Origin: Lepidodermella squamata
Taxonomy: Eukaryota > Animalia > Gastrotricha
Direction of reading: 5' to 3'
Length of the DNA stretch: 64,000 nucleotides
Assembly (NCBI GenBank): GCA_047495785.1
Contig: JBLDXI010000015.1
Location: 2,604,001-2,668,000 of the forward strand
Positions 7,122 through 45,400 of the stretch are shown in pieces. The position numbers and the translations under genes are program-made. The notes beneath the pieces are model-generated. The model saw only the letters and a program-made list of their open reading frames with translations, was not told the origin of the DNA and ran no database searches. Position 1 is the stretch's first letter. Every line of letters starts with the position of its first letter.

Positions 7122-9077
7122 CTAATAAACAAAATGGAACCAACTGAATTCGCAATCAAAAACTGGCGAAGGGGTTGAATGCTTCAGCATTAGGGTGGGC
7201 TTTAATGAATAACGGGACGCGGATTTTCCCAAATCAGCATCCTTACTAATGATCAACCAGTCCATTTCAGCAAGTGTAGCCCAATGGACTTGCTGCGGGA
7301 CGTTGAGCTCGGAATGGGTAGTTCCGAATATGTTGACATCTTCATTGCGAGCGATATCGTCATATTGGCGAACGATACTGGTAAAATCTTCCTCAAAACG
7401 CTCGTCAGTATGGCTGGTTAGGAAAACGAATATTCCGTGGCGTTTTCTATCATCGAGACGAGAGCGAATGACATCAATGGTTTGATGAACAAAGCAAAAC
7501 AGTTGAATGTCGCGGTATTCCGCGGAAATGTTGCTGTAGTCCGGATACAAAGTCAACGGCTCGAAATGCACGCCTATTTTCGCTGATATCTTCCACTGGT
7601 CTTGCGAGACAGGGATTAAACTCCTTCTCCTCTCTTCCGTTCCAGAAACAAGAGTTCTCAGACCTGCTGATAGCAGTGAAGCTATGTCAGCCACGTGAAT
7701 ATACTCCGGTAGGGAGTTAGGCAGGGCTCGAAGGAAATTCGGGTAGAAATAACTTTGCCGTAGTATCAAATCGAAGGTATTCTCATTCAGATCTTTTATC
7801 AAGATGGTTGGATGGTCGCTATTGCAGAGATTCCCGGTCTGCCTTTCGATTAACCACTCAATTTCAGATTTAGTTTTCACTATTGCTCCGTCTAGGGATC
7901 TGTCCGATTTGAATAAATCATCTAGAAGAGATTCATCCGTAGCAATGATCAATTTTCGGTTAGAAGCCAGAGCCAGGTAGAAAGCAACCGCGGCTGGAAC
8001 GAGACAGTCCGGGAAAGACTTCTGGCAGCTCAAAATTAAAGCCGAATTATTCGAAATATTTGATTGGAAATTCCTTAAATCGGCGACTATTCTGTCTGTT
8101 CTCTCTTGCCTTTCAGAGTACTTGGTAAATTCAATTGGCACAGCACTCTCGATAGTCAAATCAACGCCGGAAAAGCGTAAAATATTATCTTCATCTTCTT
8201 CCATCTCCTGGACTTTCGTTTTGCGAATCCATATTGGACACGTTTCACTTCTTTGGAGAAATACCCCATCAACAGCTGTCAAATCGTGCTTCAAAACAAC
8301 ATCAGGATGAATATTTTTCATGACGGCATTGAAAATTTGATGATGCTGAGGTGGCTGCAATGATGATTTGCACTGTTGAACCGCGGCTTGGCAGAATTTT
8401 CTCATGAAAATTGGAGAGCCGCCAAATAGCTCTGGCGCAAGGTAATGCTCCGCATTTTCATCGATAGGTACAAAGGCGCAAGATCCTTGACGTCGATCAA
8501 ATGGTAGCAATCTTGAAGTTTCCGTCGGAAATAACAAGGGATCTCCGTAAACAGGATGCTCAATTGCAAAACTTCCGGTGATATTGATTTCTAGACCTTT
8601 AACAGATTGCAGGTCGAAATCAGCCGATATTACAAAGCTGAAGAGTTCTTCGTTGAAGTATTCGTACTTTTCCGCATAGTCCAGATAAACCTGACATGGG
8701 TTTATTTCTCCAGGATGGATATATGCCTGGATTTTTATGGCATTCTCTTCACCGTGATTTATATCCACCCAATATTGACTGAAGAGAAAATAGGTGACAG
8801 TTTTGGCATCTAATAATTTCATTTCCTGCAGCTTTTTGTGGTAATTACCAGCAGATGGGGTTTCTTTAATGGCTAGGAGAATCGCAACGTTTCCGTCCTT
8901 GGTCTCTCTTGGTGGACGCTTGTCTCTCCACCTCGATCCAGAGGGTTTAATGCACTGACATTGCGAATAGAGGAGAAATATTGGTAAAAGATTTAGGAAA
9001 TACAAGTAGACTGACATCATTCCTGGGTAAATTAGGAATACTAGTAAGATTCTCGACTTAACGAGGGTAAACATCAT
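7122..9077 (-). CDS. GT6 (ABO-type)-like + fucosyltransferase-like fusion protein, paralog 1 (single exon, 651 aa)
   Basis: N-terminal anchor. 'VISADFDL' (DxD) and 'HPVY...PFDRRQGSCAFVPIDENAEHYLAPELFGGS' resemble ABO 'HPGFY...[29 protein letters not shown]'. C-terminal half has 'KIGVHF', 'IFVFLTS' and 'LAEMDWLII', resembling FUT motifs I-III. Confidence 0.75.
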   Translation of the reverse strand: MMFTLVKSRILLVFLIYPGMMSVYLYFLNLLPIFLLYSQCQCIKPSGSRWRDKRPPRETKDGNVAILLAIKETPSAGNYHKKLQEMKLLDAKTVTYFLFSQYWVDINHGEENAIKIQAYIHPGEINPCQVYLDYAEKYEYFNEELFSFVISADFDLQSVKGLEINITGSFAIEHPVYGDPLLFPTETSRLLPFDRRQGSCAFVPIDENAEHYLAPELFGGSPIFMRKFCQAAVQQCKSSLQPPQHHQIFNAVMKNIHPDVVLKHDLTAVDGVFLQRSETCPIWIRKTKVQEMEEDEDNILRFSGVDLTIESAVPIEFTKYSERQERTDRIVADLRNFQSNISNNSALILSCQKSFPDCLVPAAVAFYLALASNRKLIIATDESLLDDLFKSDRSLDGAIVKTKSEIEWLIERQTGNLCNSDHPTILIKDLNENTFDLILRQSYFYPNFLRALPNSLPEYIHVADIASLLSAGLRTLVSGTEERRRSLIPVSQDQWKISAKIGVHFEPLTLYPDYSNISAEYRDIQLFCFVHQTIDVIRSRLDDRKRHGIFVFLTSHTDERFEEDFTSIVRQYDDIARNEDVNIFGTTHSELNVPQQVHWATLAEMDWLIISKDADLGKSASRYSLKPTLMLKHSTPSPVFDCEFSWFHFVY

Positions 9078-9331
9078 AGGCTACGTCCCCAATCCACAGC
9101 GTATAAGGATTCAGCTGTTCTCAATGAGGCAAACCTCCTTCACCGCGATTATATTCTGAAACATTACACTACCTTGAATTTACTTAGCAATTTTTCATGC
9201 GATGTCAAATAATGGCTAATTCATATAAGTTCAATTTAATATGGCCCAGCGAAAAGCACAGACATGTATTTCAGCAATTCGGTATGTCGATCGTGAATCC
9301 AGAACGCGAATGCACTCATGAAACATATGCA

Positions 9332-10734
9332 TTAGTTATGAATAAGAGTGCTGTTGCTCGAGTTGCCTGCAATCACATTGCTGCTACTCTCTGTTGCGTA
9401 GTCGATTAGTATTAGGAAGTATGTCAGTATTGCGGCGAAAAGCTGATAATTATGCAAAAACGGAAATTGCAATTGACTAAATGCGAAGGGAAACATACTG
9501 CTGCAATGGTTTCTCTCTTCAAAGGAATCATTCCCAGGACATGCAAGCAGCAAGTTTCGGAAATTTGGCTCAGTAACATTGTCAACTGTAGAATGGCTAT
9601 ATGATGAAATATATTGTAGATTCATCATCAAAATACCTGAAGTAGTGTTGCTGAATCCTGAGATTTCACCCTGATATTGAACAACTTCTCCTTCACATTC
9701 TCCGACCAATGCGCGATGAAAGCTGACGGAATGATGAAAATCATCATCCCAGTCAAGGCGGCTAAGATCCAAAAGCCAGCCACAATCGACTCCATCGACG
9801 ATGTTTTAGTTTCTTGCGCGCTCTCTCCCCAAACACCTTGATACAATGTGACTAAGAAAGCTGTAAAACCGTAAGATGTTGTGCTAAAAATCGCAACCCT
9901 GATATGCCGATCCAAATGTCGAACCATTCGTTTGAGAAGTAAATGGCGATCTCGAATGTGCTCGAAGAACGCCTTCTCGTCCAAATCCTTCAAAACTGAA
10001 GCCGAGCTATCTTTGGAGGGAACTGGTTTGCTGTAGCGATTCACTTCTTTCGACAGCTGATGGAAACACCCAGCTAGGGTGAAGCCCAAGAGGGTTAGGT
10101 AGGCTACGCTAAGAGCAAAGCCGGCTTCGTTCAACAAGCTCAAACTTATCCAAATTAGTACTGTTACACAACTCCACGTGAAAGAATCGACACGTTCATT
10201 CAGGTTGAACGGGAATACCATGTAGCCAAGATCTTCCCGGTTTACCATCAGGGCGATTAGAACCAAAACAATGTTAGTCGTCACACCTGATATTGAAGCG
10301 ACGAAGAGACATAGAGCTGTTGGCCCTCTTTCTACCTCTGTTGGCGTGAAACTGGTTCTTACTTGCCCAGGGTATTGCCAGCCCTGTTTCAATCCCAAAA
10401 TAGGGTGGAACTTGCCTTTCCAGCAGCAGATCACCATGTTTGTTCTTACAGCTGCCAGGCTTAAATGATAGAGAGCATCGGCAGCGTGAAATATAACCCC
10501 AGACATCGGGGTATTGGACAGGTTAATTGCAGTGAACAGTAAAAACATTCGCAGGCTGTTCAGCCAAGACAAAGCCACTAAGATAACCACGTATGCTTTA
10601 TAAAGCCAATGGCTTGGTCTGTACTCCCAATCGTCATACGACCAGTTCGGCATCAGACCAAGTATCTTGAGGGCGCTGTGAAGACACCGAAACCCAGTAG
10701 CATCGCCGGGTAGCAAAGCCTTAAATTCGACCAT
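9332..10734 (-). CDS. Gustatory-receptor-like (GRL/7tm_7) protein, about 431 aa; exons 10734-9637, 9585-9499, 9442-9332
   Basis: Multiple TM helices. Spliced C-terminus LTMLLSQISETCCLHVLGMIPLKRETIAALFAAILTYFLILIDY carries the TYhhhh signature. Two phase-0 introns near the 3' end, as in GR/GRL genes. Confidence 0.85.
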
Positions 10735-11066
10735 GAAGATGAATGCATGGGTTGAGAGTTTGCCGACGCTCCGCTAAACTAAAGCTCCTTTTTGATCTCA
10801 TTCAATATTCAAACTCGAACTCTGAAAGCCATTAGCTGCCAGCGTGGGGTTCAAGCTAAAAATAACCGAGACTTGAGTTCAAAAGCCTGGATGTTCGAAT
10901 GAGCTCGAATCAGTATTTATCAGGAAGTTATCGGTATGAACCAGATTGCATACGCCTACGCTTATCTTGAACCTTGTTCGTTATCTTGGCTCATGTAGAA
11001 AAAACCCCAATACACACCATGCATTAAATTCTCTTTATATCACAATTCAGCACGGACTGTTTCATC

Positions 11067-11891
11067 ATGGTGGCAATAAGAGCCTTAATTTTGTTTTGCT
11101 TTCTCGGAGACAGTTACGGTATCTCTGAAGTTGTTTATCCCAGGCCCGCCGCGTTAACCGGATTCTGGCCGTATGATTCTTACTCTGGAGTAGCTGAGTA
11201 TGCTAAGGGCATTCAGACTCTTAACGACTATGGAAAGCTAGTAACAGATCTACCCGGACCTTTTGGTAAACCGGGGACATCCTATACAACTACAGACAAT
11301 GAAACTGCCTCGTTTATTCCAATCGCGACTTATTACGTAGAGGCTCATCAGTCCTTCTCAGTGTCTTTTTACTACTACTCTGGTGATGTCGAGACTAACA
11401 GTGGAATTGTCGAAATCATGGATTTGATAACTGTATCTCGATCTTCATCGAAAAGTCTCGAAATCTGGTCGCAAAATCTGACGGAAGGAATGAGATTTCT
11501 TAGGAAGATAGACGTCATCGATCCGAAAAAATGGCAATTTTTCGCAGTGACCTACAACTACAGCCTTGAAACTTTGAAAGTGTATGATCAAAAGGCGAAT
11601 CTTCTCGAAACGATTCAGATGCCGTTGAGATGGAAAAGTCCTATTGTTTTGGCGTTATTTAATGCCGGTTTAGGAATTATTGACGAAAGGAACATTCAGA
11701 TGTCCAGAAATGACGCATTGGCCTGCGTTCTCATTTACAAAGAAGAACTAACTCCAAATGAAATATCGCAACTACCAGGTGTTTGTGCTGCTGATAGAGT
11801 CCCGATGACGACAACAAGTACCAGCGGGACAAGCAGTTTCGGTCCCCGATTTATCGCTCTTTATCTCATGATTTCGCTTGCCCTTCTATAA
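11067..11891 (+). CDS. LamG/concanavalin-A-like (pentraxin-like fold) secreted, probably GPI-anchored protein, paralog 1
   Basis: Signal peptide, 'GFWP', 'FSVSFYY', 'KKWQFFAVTY', 'CVLIYKEELTPNEISQL', Ser/Thr linker and hydrophobic tail. Confidence 0.7.
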   Translation: MVAIRALILFCFLGDSYGISEVVYPRPAALTGFWPYDSYSGVAEYAKGIQTLNDYGKLVTDLPGPFGKPGTSYTTTDNETASFIPIATYYVEAHQSFSVSFYYYSGDVETNSGIVEIMDLITVSRSSSKSLEIWSQNLTEGMRFLRKIDVIDPKKWQFFAVTYNYSLETLKVYDQKANLLETIQMPLRWKSPIVLALFNAGLGIIDERNIQMSRNDALACVLIYKEELTPNEISQLPGVCAADRVPMTTTSTSGTSSFGPRFIALYLMISLALL

Positions 11892-12038
11892 TTTTATGAG
11901 ATTGATAACATATCTATGAAACTCGTGACGCAGAGCTTATCAGGAGTAAAACGGAATTTGGATTTCTGTATTTAGAATTTTTATCCCAGACTAGGAAATA
12001 CCACTTTTTCAGTTATTCAGTTCTTTTTTCTAAGAGAA

Positions 12039-12914
12039 ATGATTTTTCAATGTATTTTATTTTGCTTCTTCGCCTTGGAGCCTGTTGAGGGGGCTAAAAC
12101 GAATAGCGAAATAATTGTCCCGTTAACTAGGTCGAATTGGCCAAGGCCTAAAGCGATCGCAGGATTCTGGCCCTTGAACCGTGTGAGCGGTCTTTCAGAT
12201 GTAGTTGCCGGCTTGCAGCCCTACAGTGACTACGGACGGTTGGTTACTGAACTGCCCGGCCCATTCGGCCAATTAGCATCGTCATATTCAACACGACCAA
12301 GTTCCGAGAACAATAGAAGTGTCGAGGCGTTTGCGGCAACGCAAATTATTGTCAGTGCTAAATTCACAATATCATTCTACTACTACCCTAGTGATACTGA
12401 ATTAGAAAGTGGAATTTTGTCTGTTCCGGGTCTGATATACATCTCCAATCCTCGATCGGCACAGTCTTTACTGGAGATTTGGTCACAATTTTACAAAGGA
12501 GGTGGTGCGATTTTTCATAGGCTTGCTTCATGGGATGTCATTCAGCCGAAACAGTGGAACTTTTTCGTCTTGACATATGATTCTGAGAATGTTTTGAAGC
12601 TGCTTGATTCAACGGGATCTGTCATCACGACTGTGGGCTTGGAGCTGCCATGGAATATTAGCTCGATATTTATATCCAGTTTCCTCGCCGGTTCCGGAAG
12701 AGTGGGAGATGACGCAAGAATGGTGGCGATGACGCCGAAGGATGCGCTGGCGTGTGTTATGATCTATGAGGAAGTGTTAACCGCAGAGGAAATCAGAGAG
12801 CTGCCTAAGGTTTGCGAGCAAAGTCAAGCCACCAACTCCGCCCCTACGGCGATTATGCCTCGTACAAAACAGCTGTTAATTTCAGTCATTATTGTTTTTT
12901 ATCTTAAAATGTGA
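12039..12914 (+). CDS. LamG/concanavalin-A-like secreted, probably GPI-anchored protein, paralog 2
   Basis: Colinear with paralog 1 (GFWPL, LPGPFG, FTISFYY, WNFFVLTY, DALACVMIYEEVLTAEEI); hydrophobic C-terminus. Confidence 0.7.
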   Translation: MIFQCILFCFFALEPVEGAKTNSEIIVPLTRSNWPRPKAIAGFWPLNRVSGLSDVVAGLQPYSDYGRLVTELPGPFGQLASSYSTRPSSENNRSVEAFAATQIIVSAKFTISFYYYPSDTELESGILSVPGLIYISNPRSAQSLLEIWSQFYKGGGAIFHRLASWDVIQPKQWNFFVLTYDSENVLKLLDSTGSVITTVGLELPWNISSIFISSFLAGSGRVGDDARMVAMTPKDALACVMIYEEVLTAEEIRELPKVCEQSQATNSAPTAIMPRTKQLLISVIIVFYLKM

Positions 12915-13519
12915 TCATGTTATTGCGGTCGGGTTTTTCGCAAGCAGTCTCTGGAAATAAAGCACTTTTGGCAGAGATGCTTATTAACATTTTTAATACG
13001 TTAATAAGGATGAAACCTGTCGGGATGAAAATGTAAAAATCCCTAAATATTTTCTCAGAGTTAAACAAAATTTTAAAAAAGCTGAACGTCGGGTGTCAGG
13101 TTCAAATAATTAGAAAATTTGCAGAAAGAAAAGGTATCACCTTCGCTTTGCAGTAAGAATAATAAATACAAGTCCTTCAAGGCTGATTAGATTTGGTTAG
13201 GTATGCATGAAAGCGCGCAGACGTCAGCAGCGTAATATATTTTCACGCCCTACTCATGCCACATTTCTGTCATTCTATGAATACAAAACCCATAAAAATG
13301 TGTGAAATATAATGAGGCGGTATTATATGTGCGGCAATATAAGTATACTCTGGGTCTCCACATGACATTTTCTGGGCTGAAAATTTCGAAATGCTTGGGA
13401 CGCTGTCGGAGCTGAATCGGCGTCTTGTCCCTTGTCCCCCGGTGAGTTGTTACTTATTCTTCGCTGGTTGTACTATTCTCGGAGTTTCAGAGTTTCTTAG
13501 ACCTCGAAAATGCTGAGTC

Positions 13520-14400
13520 TCTTTCATCAAGCGGAATGGTTGCAATGGCGGCGGAACGAGGTGACAAGCTTTGGATCAAAGCATGGCGTCTTTTGGGCTC
13601 TCCTATTACTACTCCAAGCACTGAAAGTTGCCCGATAACTATCAGGCGATGGCAGAGACCGTCTCGGTTTTCAGCTTGACAAATTGTTGTTCGAGCTGAG
13701 CCTTTCTTGACTCTGTCAAAGCGTCATACCCGTCAAAGCGTCCCAAGTTGTCGTTGTAGTTGTCGTAATTCAGATATCGTTGTAGGCCGTGTGGATGTTG
13801 TTTTCGATTATGGCCTGCTGCTCGACATCTGCGTTAATCTACTTCACCAATTCTTTACTACAAATCTGAACTACTCGTGCTTCAATGTTTGGGAATTTGT
13901 GGATTCCAAAGTAATACGTTTGCTCTTTTGACTGATGCTGGATTTTTCCGTAAGGCAAATGAATCTATCGCAACAGAACAAAGCTTTTTCAGCTTTATCA
14001 TTCGTGCTGGCGAAATCCAAATGTATCTTAGAAACTAGATTTAATCTCGAGCATTTATACATTAGGGCTCCACTTCAAGCCACATTGATGTTCTGTTAAA
14101 AGAATCAGATTCATGGTAAAGGGGGCGGGAAAGGAAAAGGTTAAGGGTAGGGGTGATCAGGCTTGCATAAATGGCTGTTACTGTTTCTGCTAGAGGTTAA
14201 CGGAACGGTTGCGATGGTGTTATACTTCGCTGGTAGACTTTGGAGAAGATACTCGACTTTCTGCTGATCGTCGACGGTCTTTTCAATGATGTTGAGTTGG
14301 GCGACAAGGCCGTAAAGCCTACGAACAAGATCATTAACTGTCTCGGAGGTTCGCATTTTAAGCTCGGATAATTGTTGTTTCGGAAGCGTCGTGACGCCTC
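13520..14400 (-). mobile_element. Two degenerate Ty1/copia gag (UBN2-like) fragments in tandem
   Basis: 14141-14390 reads LKMRTSETVNDLVRRLYGLVAQLNIIEKTVDDQQKVEYLLQSLPAKYNTIAT. About 13540-13760 reads, across frameshifts, WDAL..ESRKAQLEQQFVKLKTE...GQLSVLGVVIGEPKRRHALIQSLSPRSAAIAT. No pol or LTR recognised. Confidence 0.6.
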
Positions 14401-14429
14401 AAAAGGACCTGTTAGAGCTTGAATCCGGA

Positions 14430-14512
14430 GAAAAACTGGTATTGGTCGGCTGCCGGCTGAATCGAAGTGGCCCACTTCGATTCAGCCGGCAGCCGACCAA
14501 TACCAGTTTTTC
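14430..14512. repeat. Perfect 83-bp palindrome (41-bp arms, 1-nt centre)
   Basis: GAAAAACTGGTATTGGTCGGCTGCCGGCTGAATCGAAGTGG-C-CCACTTCGATTCAGCCGGCAGCCGACCAATACCAGTTTTTC. Confidence 0.95.
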
Positions 14513-15091
14513 AGATTTGCATCAAGTTTGCCACAGTCAAATGATGACAGTCGAGCAAAAGCGGCACATGTGAAAGTCCTGATTTTCTGGTCAGGAATCT
14601 GACCCCTGAAGAGTTCGAATGACATGGAGAGTATGACTTTCTTAAAAATTGGCACCTACTGGTGGCTGTAGATGGCTATATGAAAGCCCATAGAACATAG
14701 GAGTGTCATAATCGCGCGAAGGTCGTCAAATTTTGTCTTTTCACCGCCGCGTTCGAAGCAGGCAGTTCTGACAGAGGTAATCTTCCTTCTCGGCGTTGCA
14801 TTATTAACCACCGGTTGTTCTGTATTTTGTGCCCATGCCCGCATACTTCTTGCTACACTCATGCAAATCAGTCCTCAAAACAAATTAAGCAATAAAATTA
14901 GGCGTTGTTATCTCTTGTGTTTTTTACACCGTAAAGGATGTTTCCAGGCTTCGGGAAAACCTGTTGCTCCACATGGGAAGTTGCACGGTGTTTATTCTTC
15001 CAATCAATGGCTTAATGCACGAAATATCAAATTCATGCGTACTATATGAGGAGCGTAGCAAAAAAATGTCGAATATCAACGATTCAAGAGT

Positions 15092-18034
15092 TCAGCTTTG
15101 GTCATCATGCACCAGATTGACATTGTACCACGAAAAGAAGCACGTTGTCCCGAAGGCGTTGTTAAGCCGCAGTGTAGGTTTCAACGAATAAATCGACGCA
15201 GACTCGCTAAAGGGGCTTCGATTGATCAGCAACCAATCCATTTGCGTCAGAGCCCACCAGTCGACGTAAGTTCTAGAAAACTCGTGCCAATCATCATGTT
15301 GGGTATCTTTCAGGGGCTCGTAAGCGTTAAGAGGTAAATCATCCGCATCGACTACAACGATATCTTCATTCAACATTAGATCGTCTTGTTTCTTCAAATA
15401 CCGAGCAACTTGATCCGTCCCGAATTCGCCGAGATCACTAGAGACGTAGACAATAATCCCGTGGCGTTTCCCTTCATGTAAAAACGACCGAATCAGCAAT
15501 CTTAGATGTTCGACTAAGCACAGAATTTGAGGCATCCAAAGGTCTTGGTTCAACCGGCAATCTGTGCCGTTCCAAATCATGTTCCGGCAGGCCCGAATGT
15601 GAAGCCCGATTTTAGCGGCTTTTCGCCACTTCTCACCGCCGATGCTTTTGACAACCGACTTTTCGAAGGTTTCCTTCAATTTTTGAGATCCATCGCCGAA
15701 AATAATCCTCATCGCCGCAGATTGGAGAACGGAAAAATCGGAATGAGTCATAATTTCCGGGAGCAGGCCAGGTAAACGCTCCAGGATGTTTGGGTAGAAA
15801 TTAGGATTGTTGAAAGTTTGTTTAATTACGAAGGTCGCTCGATTTGTCGTGACCTGCCAGTCTGCGAAGCTGTGGAAATTTTTCAGCGAGAAATTTCTCC
15901 GCGCAATTTCCAAGGAGAAAAAGAAGGCTTTTGCATCGTATAAATCCAACCAGGTCTGGTTTTTCGAGCTGATTTTAGAGATTGAGTCAGAGTAGAGATC
16001 AAGTGGTAGATCGTATATCGCGTTCGGGGTCCGAAAAGCAGCGGAAATATCGTGAGTTCGAGTCCAGTTGTAGTGAAAAAATCGCCCAGTTGCGAGTGAT
16101 ATGAAAAAAGAGGTAATTAGGCCACGAATTCGGTCGCCGAAACCACCGCATTGATCACCAGGTGAACAGCGATATGTAAAGAGCTGCAATCATCAAAAGA
16201 CCAATAAAATTATGAGGAAATTATTTTGAATTTCAAAATTTGAATATTGTTAAGTTTTGTTTACAAATATCAAAGGGGAATCGGGAAATCAAGCACTTGG
16301 GATTAAAATAATATAATCCCGGGAAATTTGGTCCAACCGGGTAAAATACCGAAATTGCCAAAGTTGTTAACATCGAGGTTTCCGGGTTTTTAATATCTTT
16401 GGTAAATTCGTGGACGAATTAGGATGGAAGATTCCCCCGATAGTTTTAATTTCATAAAATTACTTGCCAAATAAAATGTGGCTGTGAAATTAATAGGACT
16501 TGGGTGTAGGAATAAAAAAATAATAGGAAAATGTCCTAAATTCAGAGCCCTTAGCTTTGTGTTTTAAATATGTATGCCTATTCTCAAAGCAATAATCTCA
16601 CAATTTATATTGAATTTAAAAATTAAATGCTGAATATCGAAATTAAAAGAAAATTTAAATGATTTTGACTAAATTAAATTTCAGTATAAAATCGATAATC
16701 GATAATCGATAATCTGAGGACATCAAGCTTACTTTCAGCTTGGACGCGGTTTCAGGATTTCTCAGTTGTTCAGCCATCGGTTTGAAATAATTTGCTTTCA
16801 ACATTTCCATGACCGGGCCGACTTTCTTCTCCCGCCGCCAGAAGTACTCCGAATCGTACCACTCCTTCAACGGCGTTCGAACTTCGCCCTCTCCAACTAT
16901 AACATAGCCAACCGTGTTCAAAACAGACGACGGCACAAATCGATACGTAATTTTCGCCGGTTTCGCAACTTCAACACCAGTCTCAAGTGGCACCATATAT
17001 TCAGGCCCAAGCAGCGTGACACGCTCATTCATCATAAATTTGTTGAAAAGCTGATGAAATTCCGGCCGATTCCTAGAATACATCTCCTCATCCTTACAAT
17101 TCGAGACAATTTTCCTGCAAAAAGTTTCGATAACCCCCGTTTTTCCAGCGAAAAATTCCGAAGCGTAGTAGTGATCAGCCTCACTGCCATGGGGCACATA
17201 GGCACAGGAGCCTGGTCTTCGGTCGTAAGGCCATAAGCTGCGCTTCTCCTTAGGAAACAGGGTCGAATCGTCGTAGATAGGGTGTCTAATCACCACGTGA
17301 TCTCCTATCAGCAACTCCTCCGTTAAATTGACCTTTTGCGCGAAACTGACCCGCGCATCGAACGATATCACGTGACTAAATAAGGTCGCGTCAAAAAATC
17401 GATATTTATCAGCGTAGTCCAGATAAGTCCGGCACGGGTTAACCTCGCCATGCAAAATGACAGCCGGAATAGGAATGACGTCACGTGACGAGAAGGTCGC
17501 AGCTTGTTGCTCGTTCATGTATTGGTCCATGACGAAATAAACGACATGTCTCGCCTCGCCGCGGTAAAAATCGGACGTATTCTGCTTACCTTGCGACGTT
17601 AACAGCGCGTTCCACTCGACTGACCCCACCAAATAATCGCGACTTGACCTGACAACATCCAGCGCTTGATTAACGCGGTTATTCATGATTATCACCGCGA
17701 CGTTGTTTCCACCATTTTTCGGCAATTTCTCGCGCCAATCAGGCAGCGGCGGCGGGCCGTTATCACCGGTGTATTGCCGATATTTGTTGACTGTAACAAC
17801 TGTGAGGAGGGCGATGAAAATGAGAAAAATTAAGGCGGCTGTTGCGAGTTGAAGCCGCGATCGTCGTTGCACTTGCATTTTCGTGTACGCGCCAATTGCG
17901 GCGAAAAATCGCGTTGTAGCGGCTGTTATTGTTCGTGATGATGATCTCAGCTTGCTGCCGCCGCCGCGGCAGTCTGTGTAACACCGGCCGTTTAACATGT
18001 TAACGCGGACGTTGAACAGCCGAAATGTGAACAT
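15092..18034 (-). CDS. GT6-like + fucosyltransferase fusion protein, paralog 2 (exons 18034-16733, 16183-15092; about 797 aa)
   Basis: Type II TM anchor. GT6-like 'RHPIY...WPYDRRPGSCAYVP...HYYASEFFAG' and 'LLGPEYM'. Phase-0 intron GTAAGC...TTGCAG joins it to 'CGGFGDRIRGL', 'KIGLHIR', 'YVSSD' and 'DWWALTQMDWLLINRSPFS'. Same domain order as the intron-less paralog at 7122-9077. Confidence 0.8.
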
Positions 18035-37197: not shown

Positions 37198-39546
37198 ATG
37201 TTTCCGAATGAGCTAACCGCGGCAATAGAAGGTCATGTTAAATACATCTTCGACAAGTCACAGGCTATAATTATTTTCATCAATAGTTACGAATCGATTT
37301 CCATTCTTTGTTGATGAGGTCTACGCTTTTTTGAGCGAAATAATTGGCATATGGTGGACATCAAGCGTTGCCATGTGAGAAGTAACTTCCCAAGAGACAC
37401 TCGATCGATCAATCAACCGCTTTTTTCAGCAAAAATGAGGCGAATCGATTTGAAACCATTGTTATAGCGATAACCCAAGTGCACAATCATCCTGCTTTTT
37501 TTACCTCCGCAGAATATTTCAAGCTCGATTTTGAAACCTGACTAACAAAATCACAAATTTAAACGCGATGAATTTCAGCTCAAAAACGTATGAATTCGCT
37601 TCGAGTTTGGCGGCTATGTAAGAGTTTAAAATTCCGAGAAAACTCAAATTTTTAAAGCACAATTTTTAGTTATCGACCTCCGCCACTGAACGCCTCATTA
37701 GCTTGGACTCGAGGCGTTGTACCCTATGAGATTGACCACGACTCGTTCCCTCGCGGCATCTATTTCGGAGCCTTGGAAAGCATCATGTGGGCCATGGAAC
37801 AGTTCAATCGCTACACCGTCGTGCAATTCGCACAGAAGACTAACGAATTTGATTTCTTGAACTTCACGTATCACCCACTTCCGACAAGGTCATCGCATGT
37901 CGGCAGGCAAGGCGGGCGGCAGGTCTTGTACCTGACGGGTGACGCGCCGAAAGAGGTCCTCCTCCACGAGTTGATGCATGTCATTGGATTCCAGCATGAT
38001 TCATCGCAAGTGGGACACGGCAAATATGTGTCTAATATCGATATCAAAGATCCGAATAATATTAGGTAAAAATTTATCGGCGAATTGACGAAATTTTCGA
38101 ATATCGCTGCTGAAAAAGTTAATCAAGATTGCACAATCCAATTTAAGCATTTTTCCACCGACTTTTTCGATTTTTGACGATTTTGATGTTTTACTCTCGC
38201 GATCGATAAAGATGCACCCAGTGACCTCAGATTTATTATTTCATTTATCTGGTACCATCAGGCTTGCAGGAAAATTTCAATATTGGCTACCGAGCCTGAT
38301 GATATCGGAAAAATCACTGATTTTAAAAATCGATATTAGGAATCGATATCGAATGTCAAGTATACAGCATGTCCCATAAGTAACTCAAACAAAGGAAATT
38401 CACGGAAAAGGGATCAGGAACTCTTAAAAATGCGGCGAATCTTGAACAAAAATCAAAAAGCCTTAAATAGTTATCAAGCGTGTGTCACTTGTCAGTGGGA
38501 TCCGGAGAAATTCGGTGAAACTGGGTAAAATACCGAAAATACCGAACCAGTTACCATCGGGGTTTTACGGGAATTTCCCGGTAAAATTGCGGACAAAAGA
38601 TGGCAGTTTTAAGCCTGAAGGTCAAAAAAAGTTGAATTTTCTACAAAAATTTTCAAAATTTGAAAATTGTTGCGCCATGGGACACACTGTAACCATTTTT
38701 AATAAATGATAAATTTATTTAGTTAATTTATTAATTTGATAATTAATAATTAATAATCATAAATAATTTGATAATTAAATTTTGTATAGTAATTATTATG
38801 AGATTATTTTATAAGATTTTCAACGATTTTTCGCTCACTTTTTCTTACTTCTTACCTTAATTTTGGGACAAAAATGTTTGCTCTTAGCTCAACTCGCGAA
38901 ATGAACCTAAACTATCATTATAAAAATTCTCTTTTTTTCCAGGTTGAGCGGATGCGTAATTATAGGTTCATTCGATGCCGAATCTGTAATGCACTACCCA
39001 TGCAGTTTTACCAATCCCTACAACAACAGTCAATTATTACGCCGTAACGAAACCAATCGAACACCCAGACTAGCCAGCCTCAGCCAAAGCGATATCGCCG
39101 CTGTGAATCAACTATACGGCGCTAAAAATTCGCCCCCAATTTACACCGACGTATCTTTTATGAGCTGCCGAACATGCTACGGCGACAAGTCGAAAGCAGC
39201 AATTTGTTCGAAATGCGCCGAAACCGAGCATTTCGGTCATCAAATGTCACCCATCGATGATTTCACTGTCATGGCGTGCCGGTGTGGCCGTTACCAGAAT
39301 CGAATGGCGTTATGCACGGCGGTGTTGAGTGACAAAAAGTACGTACGGCAGAGTGTCTACGTGTGCTACGACTGTTTCGACGTCGCCAAGTACCGCAAAG
39401 AGTACAAGGGCTTGTCACCCGGCGTGTGTTACAATTGTGTCACCCGATGTCATAAGGGACATAACATTCAACTACTCGAGCGATGTGCGCCTTTTTATTG
39501 CGATTGTGGCCTGCTAATTTGTCGCATCGCTTGCCAGGCAAAATAA
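37198..39546 (+). CDS. Astacin-like (M12A) metalloprotease fused to two UBR-box zinc fingers; exons 37198-37231, 37287-37374, 37579-37617, 37670-38065, 38943-39546
   Basis: 'WTRGVVPYEI', 'SHVGRQGGRQVL', 'HELMHVIGFQH', Met-turn 'FDAESVMHY', 'LSQSDIAAVNQLY'. Then 'CRTC...ICSKCAETEHFGH...CRCG' and 'CT...YVRQSVYVCYDC...GVCYNCVTRCHKGH...FYCDCG'. The first three exons are hand-inferred from phase-consistent GT-AG sites. Confidence 0.8.
38508..38600 (+). repeat. Representative copy of a dispersed repeat of about 100 bp (other copies about 16324-16422, 18700-18785, 43780-43890; reverse about 40333-40405, 40480-40535)
   Basis: Shared core GGGTAAAATACC(G/A)AA...T(A/G)CC...TTACCATCGGG..TTTT. Confidence 0.7.
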
Positions 39547-39961: not shown

Positions 39962-40946
39962 ATGGCTTTTAAATCAGTGAGTTTCTTCGTTTTAATGTCC
40001 CTCGTTGCCAAGCAAACGTCGGCTGCAGTGTCAGCAACTTGTTCAGACCCATGCAGCTCTACGATTGGCACGCTGTCGCTTACCAGCTTGGATACATCCG
40101 TCACATGTGCTTCCACGGTTGACAAATCCAAGGTGACAAGTGCACCCGCTGTCAAGTACGCGAGTGCCGTCACAGGATCCCTGTACACCCTCATAATGGT
40201 CGACCCAGACGCGCCTGCGCCTAATTGCCCGACCAGTTTGTACTACAAGCACTGGCTTGTTACCAACATCCCTGGAGCAACTCTGTCTGCAGGGTAATCA
40301 AATTTGCAAAATTAAAAAAAAAATTCTTTAAACTTACCTGAGAAAACCCGAAAAACCCCGGATGGTAAATGGCTTGGCAATTATCGGTATTTTACCCTGA
40401 ATTTATGTTGGTAAAATAATGTTTACTTATCTCCGGAAAGCGATGCTAGCGGTATTTTCCAAATTTCCGAACCTAATTTCCGAAAAACCCGAAAAAGCGG
40501 TAATATCGGTATTTTATACCCAGTTTTACCAAATTTCTGTTGTTTTATTATTATGTCTGAATTGTTGATTTTTTATTAGAACCAGCGATTTGGGAACCTC
40601 AGGTAAAGATTGGACAATCGTCACCGCTTACGAAGCTCCAGCCCCAACTAAAGGCGCTCATCGCTATCAATTTTTCCTAATGAAACAAACCGCTTCGTTG
40701 AGCGTCGCGGCCGATACTACCCGCGATAGTTTCGACCTGGTCGGCTTCGTTAAAACCAACAGTTTAACAACGTTGACGGCTGGCTTTGCGTACAAGGTTG
40801 ACAGTGGAGCGGCTGATAGCTGCACAGCGACTACAACATCCTGCGTCAGTTTATTTTCCGCCGCTAGCAGCCGTTTTTCTGCAGCCAACACTGCGACAAC
40901 AATAGCGGCAGCGTGTTTTTTCGTTGTTTTAGCGCGGCTTATGTAA
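39962..40946 (+). CDS. PEBP/RKIP-family protein with signal peptide and GPI-like tail (exons 39962-40293, 40580-40946)
   Basis: 'YTLIMVDPDAP', 'HWLVTNIPG', 'YEAPAPTKGAHRYQFFL'; hydrophobic N- and C-termini. Confidence 0.88.
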
Positions 40947-42458: not shown

Positions 42459-45400
42459 ATGAGGGATTTAGTCACAAATTTATCAATTTTTATTGTGTTA
42501 TTATACTCAATCGACTCGATCGCCGAAGAGACTGAGGATTATTACGATACGGATCAACCCGGCGCTGCTCCGGCACCTGTAGGCGGAGGCCCTATTACGG
42601 GTGATAATTACGGAATGGGTGACTACGGCGAGACTGAAGTCTCTGAACCTTCGTCCTTCCTCAACATTGGCGCGCCTTGTAACCCGGACAACGACGACTG
42701 CGGTGCTAATATGGAATGCCGTAAGGTGACCTACTGTCCAGGTGAGGAGCCGACGTGTCAGTGCGCCGCCGGTTGGGCGGAAGATAAATCGGGGAAAACG
42801 TGCCGCAAACTGGTCGAACTCGGCCAGGCGTGTTTAGGCACCGATTTGCAATGCGCGGCTGAGAATTCGTTCTGCAACGCAACGCTGAACAAGTGCCAGT
42901 GCCGGCCGGACTACAAGCCGGGGCCGAATGGCAACGACTGCGTTTGGACGTGGAAGACGCTGTTTTATGGCCAGACGTGTCGCAAAACTATCCAGTGCCA
43001 CTACAACATGTCCTGTGATAACTTTGTCTGTTCTTGCCCTCCTGGATCTCGAGGTATAAATGAAAATTGATGATAATTATTTTTTCGTAAATTTCATAAC
43101 CTGGTATCAAACGCTAGCTGTTCTACTTTTCAGATGATTTAAAAAATGAATAGGCCGCGTCAGCAAAGGGATGACGAGGCTTGATACTGAAAATAATGAC
43201 GCATAAACAACGCTTTGAAATTTATTTGGATTTTTTTTAATTAATCCTGGAATTTCGAATAATGGAAAGGCATTTTTATCTTTTAACATTATTCCAAAAA
43301 ATTGAGGATTTTAATTTAATTTCAATTTTTAATTCAACATTTATGTGGTCAGACTTTTCAGCGGTGACACTTCAGCAAATAAGGGTCAAATCAGCAGTGA
43401 CATTTCATCAGTGACGCACCTTGTCAGTAAACATTTCATAAAAATCACATTTTAGTATTAATTTAAATAATTCTTGTAGACAAGTGAGCAGTGACATTTC
43501 AGCAGAGACAGTCCCCCTGCTGAATACGGCTGAAATTCTGTTGATGAAATGTCCCCGCTGAAATGTCACTGCGCAAATGTCACCGAAATAAAGATAATAA
43601 ATTTGGAAAAATAGAGGATAAATTATCAAAAATCACTGCTGACTTGTCACTGATGATTTGTCACTGCACAAATGTCGCAGCTCAACTGTCACTGCTCATT
43701 TGACCCTCATTTGCTGAAATGTCACTGCTGAAAAGTCGTTAACCCAAAATTTAATGTTCGCAAGTAAACTCAAGTGAAAAAATTGGGTCCCACCGGGTAA
43801 AATACCAAATAATACCGAACCGATTACCATCGGGTTTTCCTGGTTTTCTTCGGTAAATTCTTCATTTCTTTGGTCAAATCGCGGATAAAGACGCGGATAG
43901 AGACAGGTTTAATTTCACAGAATAAGTTAAAAGCTATGAACCTAAAGCATTTAGTTGCAAAATCAAAATATGGTTGCCCAAATTTTGGGACACGCTGTGA
44001 ATCACACAAAAAATTGCCAACATTTCGGTATATTACCTTTTAGCCCTAATATTCTTTTAAAAGGAGCTTGAATTAAAATGAAAAAGAAATAACCAACGTA
44101 ATCTAAATTCCTTAGTTTCGATTAAATCCATTTCTGAATAATATTTTTACCTTTCCTTCCTATAAATTAAATAAAAAACTGGTTATCAAACATATCCTAT
44201 AAATTAATTGTGATTATTTTCAATTTTTCAATTTTTAGTGGACACCAAAAACAACGCTCAATGCATGATCAGTAAGTGGATTTTTTTCAATTTTTCTCCT
44301 CGATCGATAAAATTTTCAATTCAGATGGCCTAGACGGAAGTTGTACAAGCGACGAGCATTGTTTCCGGCGAAATTCCGTCTGCATCTTAGGCAAATGTTC
44401 ATGCGAAGCCGGCTACTCAGCAATGTCCCTTCGCTTCGGCTCGGTCAGCGCCCCGGTGCAGGAAGTCTGCGTCGCCGCCAAAGTTCAACGCCGCCGCGTT
44501 GGCGAAACCTGCTCAGTCGCCTATCCGTTCGACCAGGGTGTCTGCATCCAAGGCCTCGTTTGCTCAACGCAATGCTCAAACGCCAGCCCGAACCCGATTT
44601 GTGTCAACCCTAGAGACAACAAAGGCCTAACCACGACTAAAGCTCCGCCCCCTAAAGTTCGAGTGCCAATCTACGGCGATAGGTGTACCTCGAGTTCAGA
44701 ATGCGTGACTACAGACGGTTCTTTGACTTGCAAACGGCCGATGCCAGCGGTTTGTAAGCCCGGTCAGCAGGCCAACCCGGGCCAACAGGGTGTCTGCGGG
44801 TGCTCTGATGGGTTCTACCTAAGCGGGGTCAACAAATGCTCTAGGAAACCAGCCGGTGTCTACCTGGGCCAGTCTTGCTCGATTTACCTGAAAAACGACA
44901 TAACCGGTAATTGCCAGGCCGATGGGTCGGTGTGCGTCGGCGGGATGTGCATATGCAAATTAGGCTATAAACCAGGCCCTCGGGGTGACGATTGCGTTTC
45001 GAATTGGAAGACCCAGTTCCACGGCGAGGAGTGCCACGATTCCATCCAGTGCCACTACAACATGTTATGCATCAACGGGACTTGCTCTTGTATCGGCGTT
45101 GGGCTACCGGCTAAACCGATTTCTCAAGAGGGCGCCATAGTCGAGTGCACCCGGGTGAACGCGGGTGACAGGTGCGCTGGGGAAAACGATTGCTCCGGGG
45201 TGGCTAACGGGTTCTGTTCGAAATTTTCGCAGCGTTGCGAATGTAAAGAAGGCTACGTATCAACAACCTTCCACCTTGGCTCGCCCGATGACGTAACAAC
45301 CCGTTGTTTGCCTAAAGAATTAAGGTTGAGAGATGAGGGCGAGGAGTGTACCGTGGGGCCGTCGCTTGATGACACCCTGTCGCGATTGGCGCCTAATTTT

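Follow-up and report, generated by a model that had tools for sequence, protein, structure and literature searches.

Two genes in a 64,000-nucleotide window of the genome of the gastrotrich Lepidodermella squamata (GenBank assembly GCA_047495785.1, contig JBLDXI010000015.1, positions 2,604,001 to 2,668,000; the window is the whole stretch of DNA analyzed, and positions below are counted from its first letter) encode proteins in which a domain homologous to the GT6 glycosyltransferases, the family of the human ABO transferases, is joined in a single polypeptide to a fucosyltransferase-like domain closest to the GT37 enzymes of plants. Both genes, here called gene 1 and gene 2, lie on the reverse strand, and their products would represent a lineage-restricted family of type-II (Golgi-type) membrane proteins, with the order membrane anchor, GT6-derived GT-A domain and C-terminal GT37-like GT-B fucosyltransferase. 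Judging from the state of the motifs in the two halves, it appears reasonably likely that gene 2 encodes an active fucosyltransferase to which a non-catalytic GT6-derived module is attached, and gene 1 a pseudo-enzyme paralogue.

Two glycosyltransferase domains in one membrane-anchored chain

An initial annotation of the window, made from the sequence letters, had proposed that both genes encode an anchor, a GT6-like domain and a fucosyltransferase-like domain in one chain, and this architecture is upheld by the open reading frames (ORFs), the domain matches and the hydrophobic segments. Gene 1 is one uninterrupted ORF of 651 codons, so that the fusion is not a splice artefact, as had been argued. 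Gene 2 is assembled from two ORFs (16655-18034 and 15092-16189, both on the reverse strand, the latter of 365 amino acids (aa)) into a spliced product of 797 aa (434 + 363 aa), with the donor AAA/GTAAGC (last exon base 16733) and the acceptor TTGCAG/ (first exon base 16183), both in phase 0. Two public sequencing runs cover the stretch, X1 being DNA and X2 presumed, by the guess of the tool, to be RNA. The 16733/16183 junction, proposed as a check on the model, is found spliced in a single X2 contig, which joins 16183 to 16733 and leaves out the 549 bases of the predicted intron, bounded by CT..AC on the forward strand; X2 depth also falls to zero at 16456-16663 within the intron, which X1 covers continuously. 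Splice support for gene 2 is modest, coming from this one contig, whose shorter side measures 29 letters and which lies exactly on the predicted junction. The fusion of the two domains is nevertheless independent of this splice, because in gene 1 and in two metagenomic relatives, P0016 and P0025, a single ORF encodes the whole architecture.

Each protein has one strong hydrophobic segment (Kyte-Doolittle maximum 2.06 at aa 10-28 in gene 1 and 2.74 at aa 64-82 in gene 2), located N-terminally as expected for type-II Golgi glycosyltransferases. The two products are 31% identical overall, with BLASTP E values of 2e-38 for the N-terminal and 2e-26 for the C-terminal half, and no copy beyond these two was found by tblastn of the window.

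The N-terminal half of both proteins is homologous to GT6, and the match to GT6 structures anticipated by the initial annotation was obtained by several routes, i.e., Pfam, phmmer against the PDB, hhalign and Foldseek. Exon 1 of gene 2 matches Pfam PF03414 (Glyco_transf_6) with 33.2 bits, above the gathering threshold of 25, and gene 1 with 18.8 bits, below it. A phmmer search of the PDB with gene 2 retrieves the ABO transferases and alpha3GalT at E about 3e-5, and a five-sequence family profile improves the match to PDB GT6 entries to 1.2e-8. A hidden Markov model (HMM) built only from canonical GT6 proteins, i.e., a comparator set of 84 viral, bacterial and archaeal sequences with DXD and WHDES collected with the phage-type GT6 of metagenomic locus L004 as the starting point, scores gene 2 at 38.2 bits and gene 1 at 24.8 bits. 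Profile-profile alignment of the family with canonical GT6 by hhalign gives a probability of 97.7-98% and E 2e-12 to 2e-13 over 220 columns, reaching from the first beta-strand as far as (S/G)PEY. For gene 2 aa 100-434, the AlphaFold 2 (AF2) model has moderate quality (overall predicted local distance difference test (pLDDT) 67, core 75-90), and all of its top 50 PDB matches in Foldseek are GT6 structures, with BoGT6a at 1.8e-11 and GTA/GTB and alpha3GalT among them (template modelling (TM) score by target 0.55-0.70). Language-model features of this half likewise indicate GT6 clusters.

The GT6 gene at L004 3755-4450 belongs, together with L008-L087, to a large group of phage-type GT6 genes with intact DXD and WHDES, which share 66-89% mutual identity and are found on IMG/VR viral contigs, some of them longer than 100 kb.

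The C-terminal half is a fucosyltransferase-like domain, as had been proposed, and by profile and Foldseek comparisons its nearest family is GT37, not GT11 or GT23. Exon 2 of gene 2 alone has no Pfam match (E up to 1) and no PDB match by phmmer. An exhaustive HMMER search with it returned 105 relatives, and a family profile built from 38 sequences (351 positions) matches the GT37 enzymes AtFUT4 (9NQH, E 8.5e-12) and AtFUT1 (5KOE, 5KOP, 5KX6, E about 1e-10) and then the GT23 enzyme NodZ (E 9e-4), the GT37 matches spanning nearly the entire domain (positions 17-326 of 351). The AF2 model of exon 2 (pLDDT 84, predicted TM score 0.88) ranks AtFUT1 first in Foldseek (1.4e-10, TM about 0.6), followed by FUT8, NodZ and POFUT1, and language-model features agree with a GT37-like assignment. 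Against Pfam PF03254 (XG_FTase, gathering threshold 23.4 bits), relatives score 12-21 bits, the match being confined to the Gly-loop, and none of the family members tested exceeds the threshold; the domain is therefore termed GT37-like and falls short of GT37 membership. Named standalone relatives of this domain occur in Marchantia, Chlorokybus and Basidiobolus.

Table 1 Coordinates of genes 1 and 2, their domains and diagnostic residues in the window. Residue numbers refer to the respective protein; the last column gives the basis of the assignment.
Feature	Coordinates	Strand	Basis
Gene 1 coding sequence, single exon: anchor, GT6-like domain, degenerate fucosyltransferase-like domain	7122..9077	(-)	Uninterrupted ORF, 651 aa + stop
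Gene 1 N-terminal hydrophobic signal anchor, about aa 10-37	8967..9050	(-)	
Gene 1 GT6-like GT-A domain, about aa 63-263	8289..8891	(-)	Iterated profile match aa 89-263; alignments
Gene 1 D153-F154-D155 at DXD position	8613..8621	(-)	MAFFT/hhalign register; HMMER register off by one
Gene 1 fucosyltransferase-like GT-B domain, motifs lost	7134..8045	(-)	BLASTP to gene 2 exon 2, E 2e-26
Gene 1 Glu506 at conserved donor-binding Arg position (KIGVHFE)	7560..7562	(-)	Motif table
Gene 2 exon 1, 434 aa: cytoplasmic tail, anchor, GT6-like domain, linker helix	16733..18034	(-)	
Gene 2 intron, 549 bases, GT..AG, phase 0	16184..16732	(-)	
Gene 2 exon 2, 363 aa + stop: GT37-like GT-B fucosyltransferase domain	15092..16183	(-)	
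Gene 2 signal anchor, aa 64-82	17789..17845	(-)	
Gene 2 GT6-like GT-A domain, about aa 104-357	16964..17725	(-)	Pfam, hhalign, AF2, Foldseek
Gene 2 D226-A227-R228 at DXD position, second Asp absent	17351..17359	(-)	Alignments; AF2 strand ends at D226
Gene 2 H327-Q328, opposite catalytic (D)E-S of GT6 WHDES	17051..17056	(-)	Invariant family columns
Gene 2 GGFGDR Gly-rich loop, aligned with GLGNR of AtFUT1	16130..16147	(-)	
Gene 2 Arg of KIGLHIR, aligned with Arg of AtFUT1 IGIQVR	15593..15595	(-)	HMM alignment

Active-site residues and the state of the two domains across the family

The catalytic Glu of GT6 enzymes lies in a W-H-D-E-S loop (Glu303 in ABO, Glu317 in alpha3GalT, Glu192 in BoGT6a), and a DXD motif (metal-dependent enzymes) or an NXN motif (bacterial enzymes) ends the fourth strand. 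In the fused family the loop reads (E/Q)-(F/H)-H-Q, with His327 and Gln328 (gene 2 numbering) invariant; MAFFT sets the His opposite the catalytic Glu and hhalign leaves a gap there, and neither alignment places an acidic residue at this position in genes 1 and 2, P0016 or P0025. The replacement E192Q lowers the activity of BoGT6a to 4e-5 of the wild type (PMC3961637). In the register of MAFFT and hhalign, the residues at the DXD position are D-A-R in gene 2, D-N-R in P0025, D-S-F in P0016 and D-F-D in gene 1, and no alignment register gives gene 2 a full DXD. With both the catalytic Glu and the second Asp of DXD lost, the GT6-derived domain of gene 2 most likely transfers no sugar.

Other GT6 features are kept in the family, namely HP, (L/W)P(F/Y)DRR..SC, Y...FFGG and the Asn of the helix that follows the loop, and four family-specific cysteines are invariant in the GT6-like domain. 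When gene 2 is aligned to PDB entries by phmmer, only the His of HP is retained, Phe stands for the Trp of WHDES and Pro replaces the Asp of (S/G)PEY(L/M)-W-D, all three being positions that we take to bind the acceptor in ABO. The region of gene 2 past (S/G)PEY is poorly modelled (pLDDT <50), and MAFFT pairs the linker motif LKANYFKP with a viral LKKNH segment, possibly by chance; a C-terminal Lys in contact with the UDP diphosphate (Lys359 in alpha3GalT, Lys231 in BoGT6a) is said to be conserved across all GT6.

The fucosyltransferase half of the family has the consensus C-GG(F/L)GDR, KIG.Q.R, F.TSD and DW..L..MD.L.ISRSGFGE.A. The initial annotation had listed GGFGDR, GxHIR and YVSSD for both proteins, which holds for gene 2 but not for gene 1: gene 2 keeps all motifs (CGGFGDRIRG, KIGLHIR, YVSSD and MDWLLINRSPFSESAS), whereas the counterparts in gene 1 are SFPDCLVP, KIGVHFE (Arg to Glu), TSHTD and DADLGKSAS. 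The motif Arg, present in 34 of the 38 aligned relatives, is likewise missing from P0016 (Gly) and P0025 (Lys). It corresponds to the motif I Arg of the GT-B fucosyltransferase superfamily, which binds the phosphate of GDP-fucose (Arg365 in FUT8; Arg284 in AtFUT1, by the title of PDB entry 5KX6, an R284K mutant), and is thus present in gene 2 and replaced by Glu in gene 1. The homologous donor-binding Arg is essential in FUT8 (PMC7033129). With Glu in place of this Arg and no Gly-rich loop left, gene 1 cannot be a normal fucosyltransferase. The sequence in run X1 is that of a diverged allele or relative, and the listed differences from it in exon 2 of gene 2 comprise 22 synonymous and 5 non-synonymous changes over 239 and 850 sites, respectively, a ratio near 0.06, which indicates strong constraint on the fucosyltransferase half of gene 2.

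The ten clusters of fused relatives that were looked up all come from ENA metagenome contigs. P0025, an intact ORF of 727 aa, and P0016 are encoded in tandem at 7598-9781 and 10001-12277 of the eukaryotic contig L001 (sample ERZ23486787), next to NPC1-like and CATIP-like genes, and the fetched contigs of P0016/P0025 and of a short relative, P0001, carry eukaryotic neighbours such as NPC1, ODAD1 and Band_7. The tandem on L001 mirrors the clustered arrangement of genes 1 and 2 in the window. Word-indexed protein searches with gene 1, exon 1 of gene 2 and the N-terminal family alignment returned nothing beyond P0025, and a scan of metagenome contigs with the N-terminal alignment found only the canonical phage-type GT6 of L004 and no family member.

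Against the canonical GT6 HMM, P0016 reaches 27.8 bits, while the eight fused proteins with intact fucosyltransferase motifs all score below 3 bits. Common to these eight and the GT6-like set (hhalign 93%, E 2e-7) are still an FFGG...C segment and a K..YF(K)P linker helix. None of the ten fused relatives combines GT6 signal with intact fucosyltransferase motifs, and of the members found gene 2 alone keeps both, a distribution that would fit a reciprocal decay of the two halves across the family. In the tree of the fucosyltransferase domain, all 12 fused rows fall in one clade of 20 rows (support 90/95), within which genes 1 and 2 and P0025 form a clade (99/96); the pairing of gene 1 with P0025 may reflect long-branch attraction, as the tree tool warns, and the longest terminal branches among fused rows are those of P0016 (2.24) and gene 1 (1.96). 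Short proteins in this clade may be exon-only gene calls, like the ORF of gene 2 exon 2; upstream of P0001 (355 aa), no GT6-like sequence was found by tblastn.

Possible functions of the fused proteins

Working from the observed homology and fold of both halves, their union in one polypeptide and the state of their motifs, we infer the following functions. From its complete set of family motifs and the strong purifying selection on exon 2, gene 2 is predicted to encode an active fucosyltransferase that is inverting and depends on GDP-fucose; by analogy with the nearest solved relatives, its linkage is probably alpha-1,2 onto a galactose-like acceptor. Its GT6-derived domain would be a folded, disulfide-stabilised accessory module, either binding a ligand or glycan or serving as stem and scaffold. 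Gene 1 would be a fucosyltransferase-dead paralogue kept as an open frame and retaining the GT6-like pocket residues, even D-F-D, and would more probably act as a binding or regulatory partner than as an enzyme; that these proteins heterodimerise is pure conjecture. That the GT6-like pocket survives in fucosyltransferase-dead proteins speaks for an independent function of this pocket, binding being likelier than catalysis.

Several points weigh against this interpretation. The pocket residues (the Asp of the DXD strand, HP, DRR, FFGG and HQ..N) are conserved in the fucosyltransferase-dead proteins, and such conservation could mean that the GT6-like domain catalyses by a non-canonical route. 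The DXD register differs among aligners, HMMER being shifted by one residue; the alignment behind the N-terminal AF2 model contained canonical GT6 sequences, which possibly biased the model towards the GT6 fold; the substitution ratio uses only the 27 listed differences of exon 2 to X1, a subset; and the splice joint of gene 2 depends on one contig of a run that is RNA only by guess.

Of the two functional readings offered by the initial annotation, a fucosyltransferase with a GT6-derived module fits gene 2, while a one-protein blood-group pathway is disfavoured by the missing catalytic Glu and the D-A-R of gene 2. In such a bifunctional synthase, an H-like Fuc-alpha1,2-Gal would be made first and alpha-1,3-linked Gal or GalNAc then added by the GT6-like half, with His327 or another residue standing in for the canonical Glu. 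The pairing is coherent, ABO-type GT6 enzymes acting on Fuc-alpha1,2-Gal, which is the GT37 product; an atlas cluster of mostly bacterial proteins that combine GT6 with GT11 suggests that such fusions are selected; and the pocket residues are invariant across paralogues of about 25-35% identity, including those whose fucosyltransferase half is dead. However, the Glu is absent from all members, a loss to be set beside the residual activity of BoGT6a E192Q, gene 2 lacks the second Asp of DXD, and the presumed acceptor positions in HP, WHDES and (S/G)PEY(L/M)-W-D are altered as described above, so that we regard bifunctionality as decidedly unlikely. About equally unlikely is its evolutionary extension, in which the family would descend from a single-chain, two-step synthase of H/A/B-like epitopes that arose independently of vertebrates, with paralogues each keeping one half and gene 2 still bifunctional through a His-based GT6-like site.

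A GT6-like domain that serves as a structural stem or spacer without ligand binding, its pocket residues being conserved for folding, would account for the eight motif-intact relatives, which have lost almost all GT6 signal and whose fucosyltransferase evidently works without a GT6-like pocket, and the four invariant cysteines point to a disulfide-stabilised scaffold. The retention of GT6-like residues in gene 1, P0016 and P0025, where those of the fucosyltransferase are lost, is hard to explain in this way, and we consider a mere stem unlikely, if still deserving some weight. As for gene 1, its long terminal branch, second among the fused rows, and the degeneration of all four fucosyltransferase motifs would also suit a decaying duplicate, i.e., a young pseudogene rather than a functional pseudo-enzyme. 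Against this stand a 651-codon frame that is still open although its amino-acid sequence differs from that of gene 2 by about 70%, and the fact that its nearest relative P0025, from another organism, is intact and also lacks the Arg, with the caveat on that pairing noted above; a pseudogene is thus very improbable. The reading retained here remains that of a fucosyltransferase with a non-catalytic GT6-derived module in gene 2 and a pseudo-enzyme in gene 1.

Genomic surroundings and relation to known enzymes

Between genes 1 and 2 lie two tandem paralogues on the forward strand (11067-11891 and 12039-12914; 40% identical, E 9e-58), whose products match the Laminin_G_3/concanavalin-A-like lectin fold with 23.6 and 16.3 bits, below the cut-off of 27.6, and have a hydrophobic N-terminal leader and a hydrophobic C-terminal tail, possibly a glycosylphosphatidylinositol (GPI) signal. 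Their tie to the glycosyltransferase genes is only positional. The immediate 5' neighbour of gene 1 (9628-10734, reverse strand) is an ORF of 368 aa with several hydrophobic segments and no significant Pfam match, which may encode an unclassified multi-pass membrane protein. The intron of gene 2 contains a short dispersed repeat (about 16316-16409), with partial copies near 38500-38565, 43780-43860 and 40343-40397; depth of X1 contigs over 16248-16351 is about 6,900, compared with about 80 in the flanks, and many contigs end at 16315-16356. The repeat is probably a high-copy mobile-element fragment.

With the GT6 family (PF03414; human ABO GTA/GTB, bovine alpha3GalT, BoGT6a and phage GT6), the fused proteins share the GT-A fold from the first beta-strand to (S/G)PEY, the elements HP, (D/E)RR..S.AY(V/I)P and FFGG, and the type-II topology of the vertebrate enzymes. 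They differ in having His-Gln for the WHDES Glu, four cysteines of their own and, in gene 2, an incomplete DXD, in the long helix and second glycosyltransferase domain that follow, and in their invertebrate host. The GT37 enzymes (PF03254), represented by the xyloglucan alpha-1,2-fucosyltransferase AtFUT1 (5KOE/5KOP/5KWK) and by AtFUT4 (9NQH), give the best profile and fold matches, and the G(F/L)G(D/N)R loop, IG.Q.R and the C-terminal D..(I/V).S..S.FG align along the whole domain. In contrast with the plant catalytic domains, however, that of the fused family is about 100 residues shorter, scores below threshold for XG_FTase, is fused to a GT6-like domain and belongs to a clade of its own, which includes the standalone relatives from Marchantia, Chlorokybus and Basidiobolus.

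A GT6 domain and a fucosyltransferase-family domain are also annotated in one chain in the mostly bacterial cluster mentioned above (ESM Atlas, 557 aa, 169 members, mainly Thermodesulfobacteriota), which differs in that its partner is GT11, not GT37-like, and in being prokaryotic; it is known here by automatic cluster annotation alone, and no paper on it was found. A further parallel is offered by EXT1 and EXT2 of the heparan-sulfate polymerase, type-II proteins whose single chain holds both a GT-B and a GT-A domain, the paralogues each having one active domain. These one-active-domain paralogues resemble the reciprocal decay seen in the fused family, but belong to the GT47 and GT64 families and have another domain order.

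The initial annotation had also been aware of no described animal protein of this architecture. No description of a GT6 and fucosyltransferase fusion was found in the literature, nor was the architecture found in any named animal protein, although the idea of fusing the two appears not to be unique to this animal, given the annotated bacterial GT6 and GT11 proteins. One paper retrieved as a possible description (PMC3499355) was rejected as a false word match.

As far as we know, fucosyltransferases of the GT37 type are regarded as enzymes of the plant cell wall. Every GT37 enzyme characterised so far forms alpha-1,2-fucose linkages and acts on plant wall glycans (PMC10933551), and Pham et al. 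state that no GT6 genes had been found in invertebrates (PMC3961637). The family described here brings GT6 and GT37-type folds together in one animal polypeptide, and its reciprocal losses represent a natural experiment on how glycosyltransferases with two domains give rise to an enzyme and a pseudo-enzyme, or to modules resembling lectins. Should the fucosylated product be a ligand of the GT6-like domain, these proteins would unite the "writer" and the "reader" of a fucose epitope in one chain; should that domain instead be active, they would represent a convergent animal route to blood-group-like glycans.

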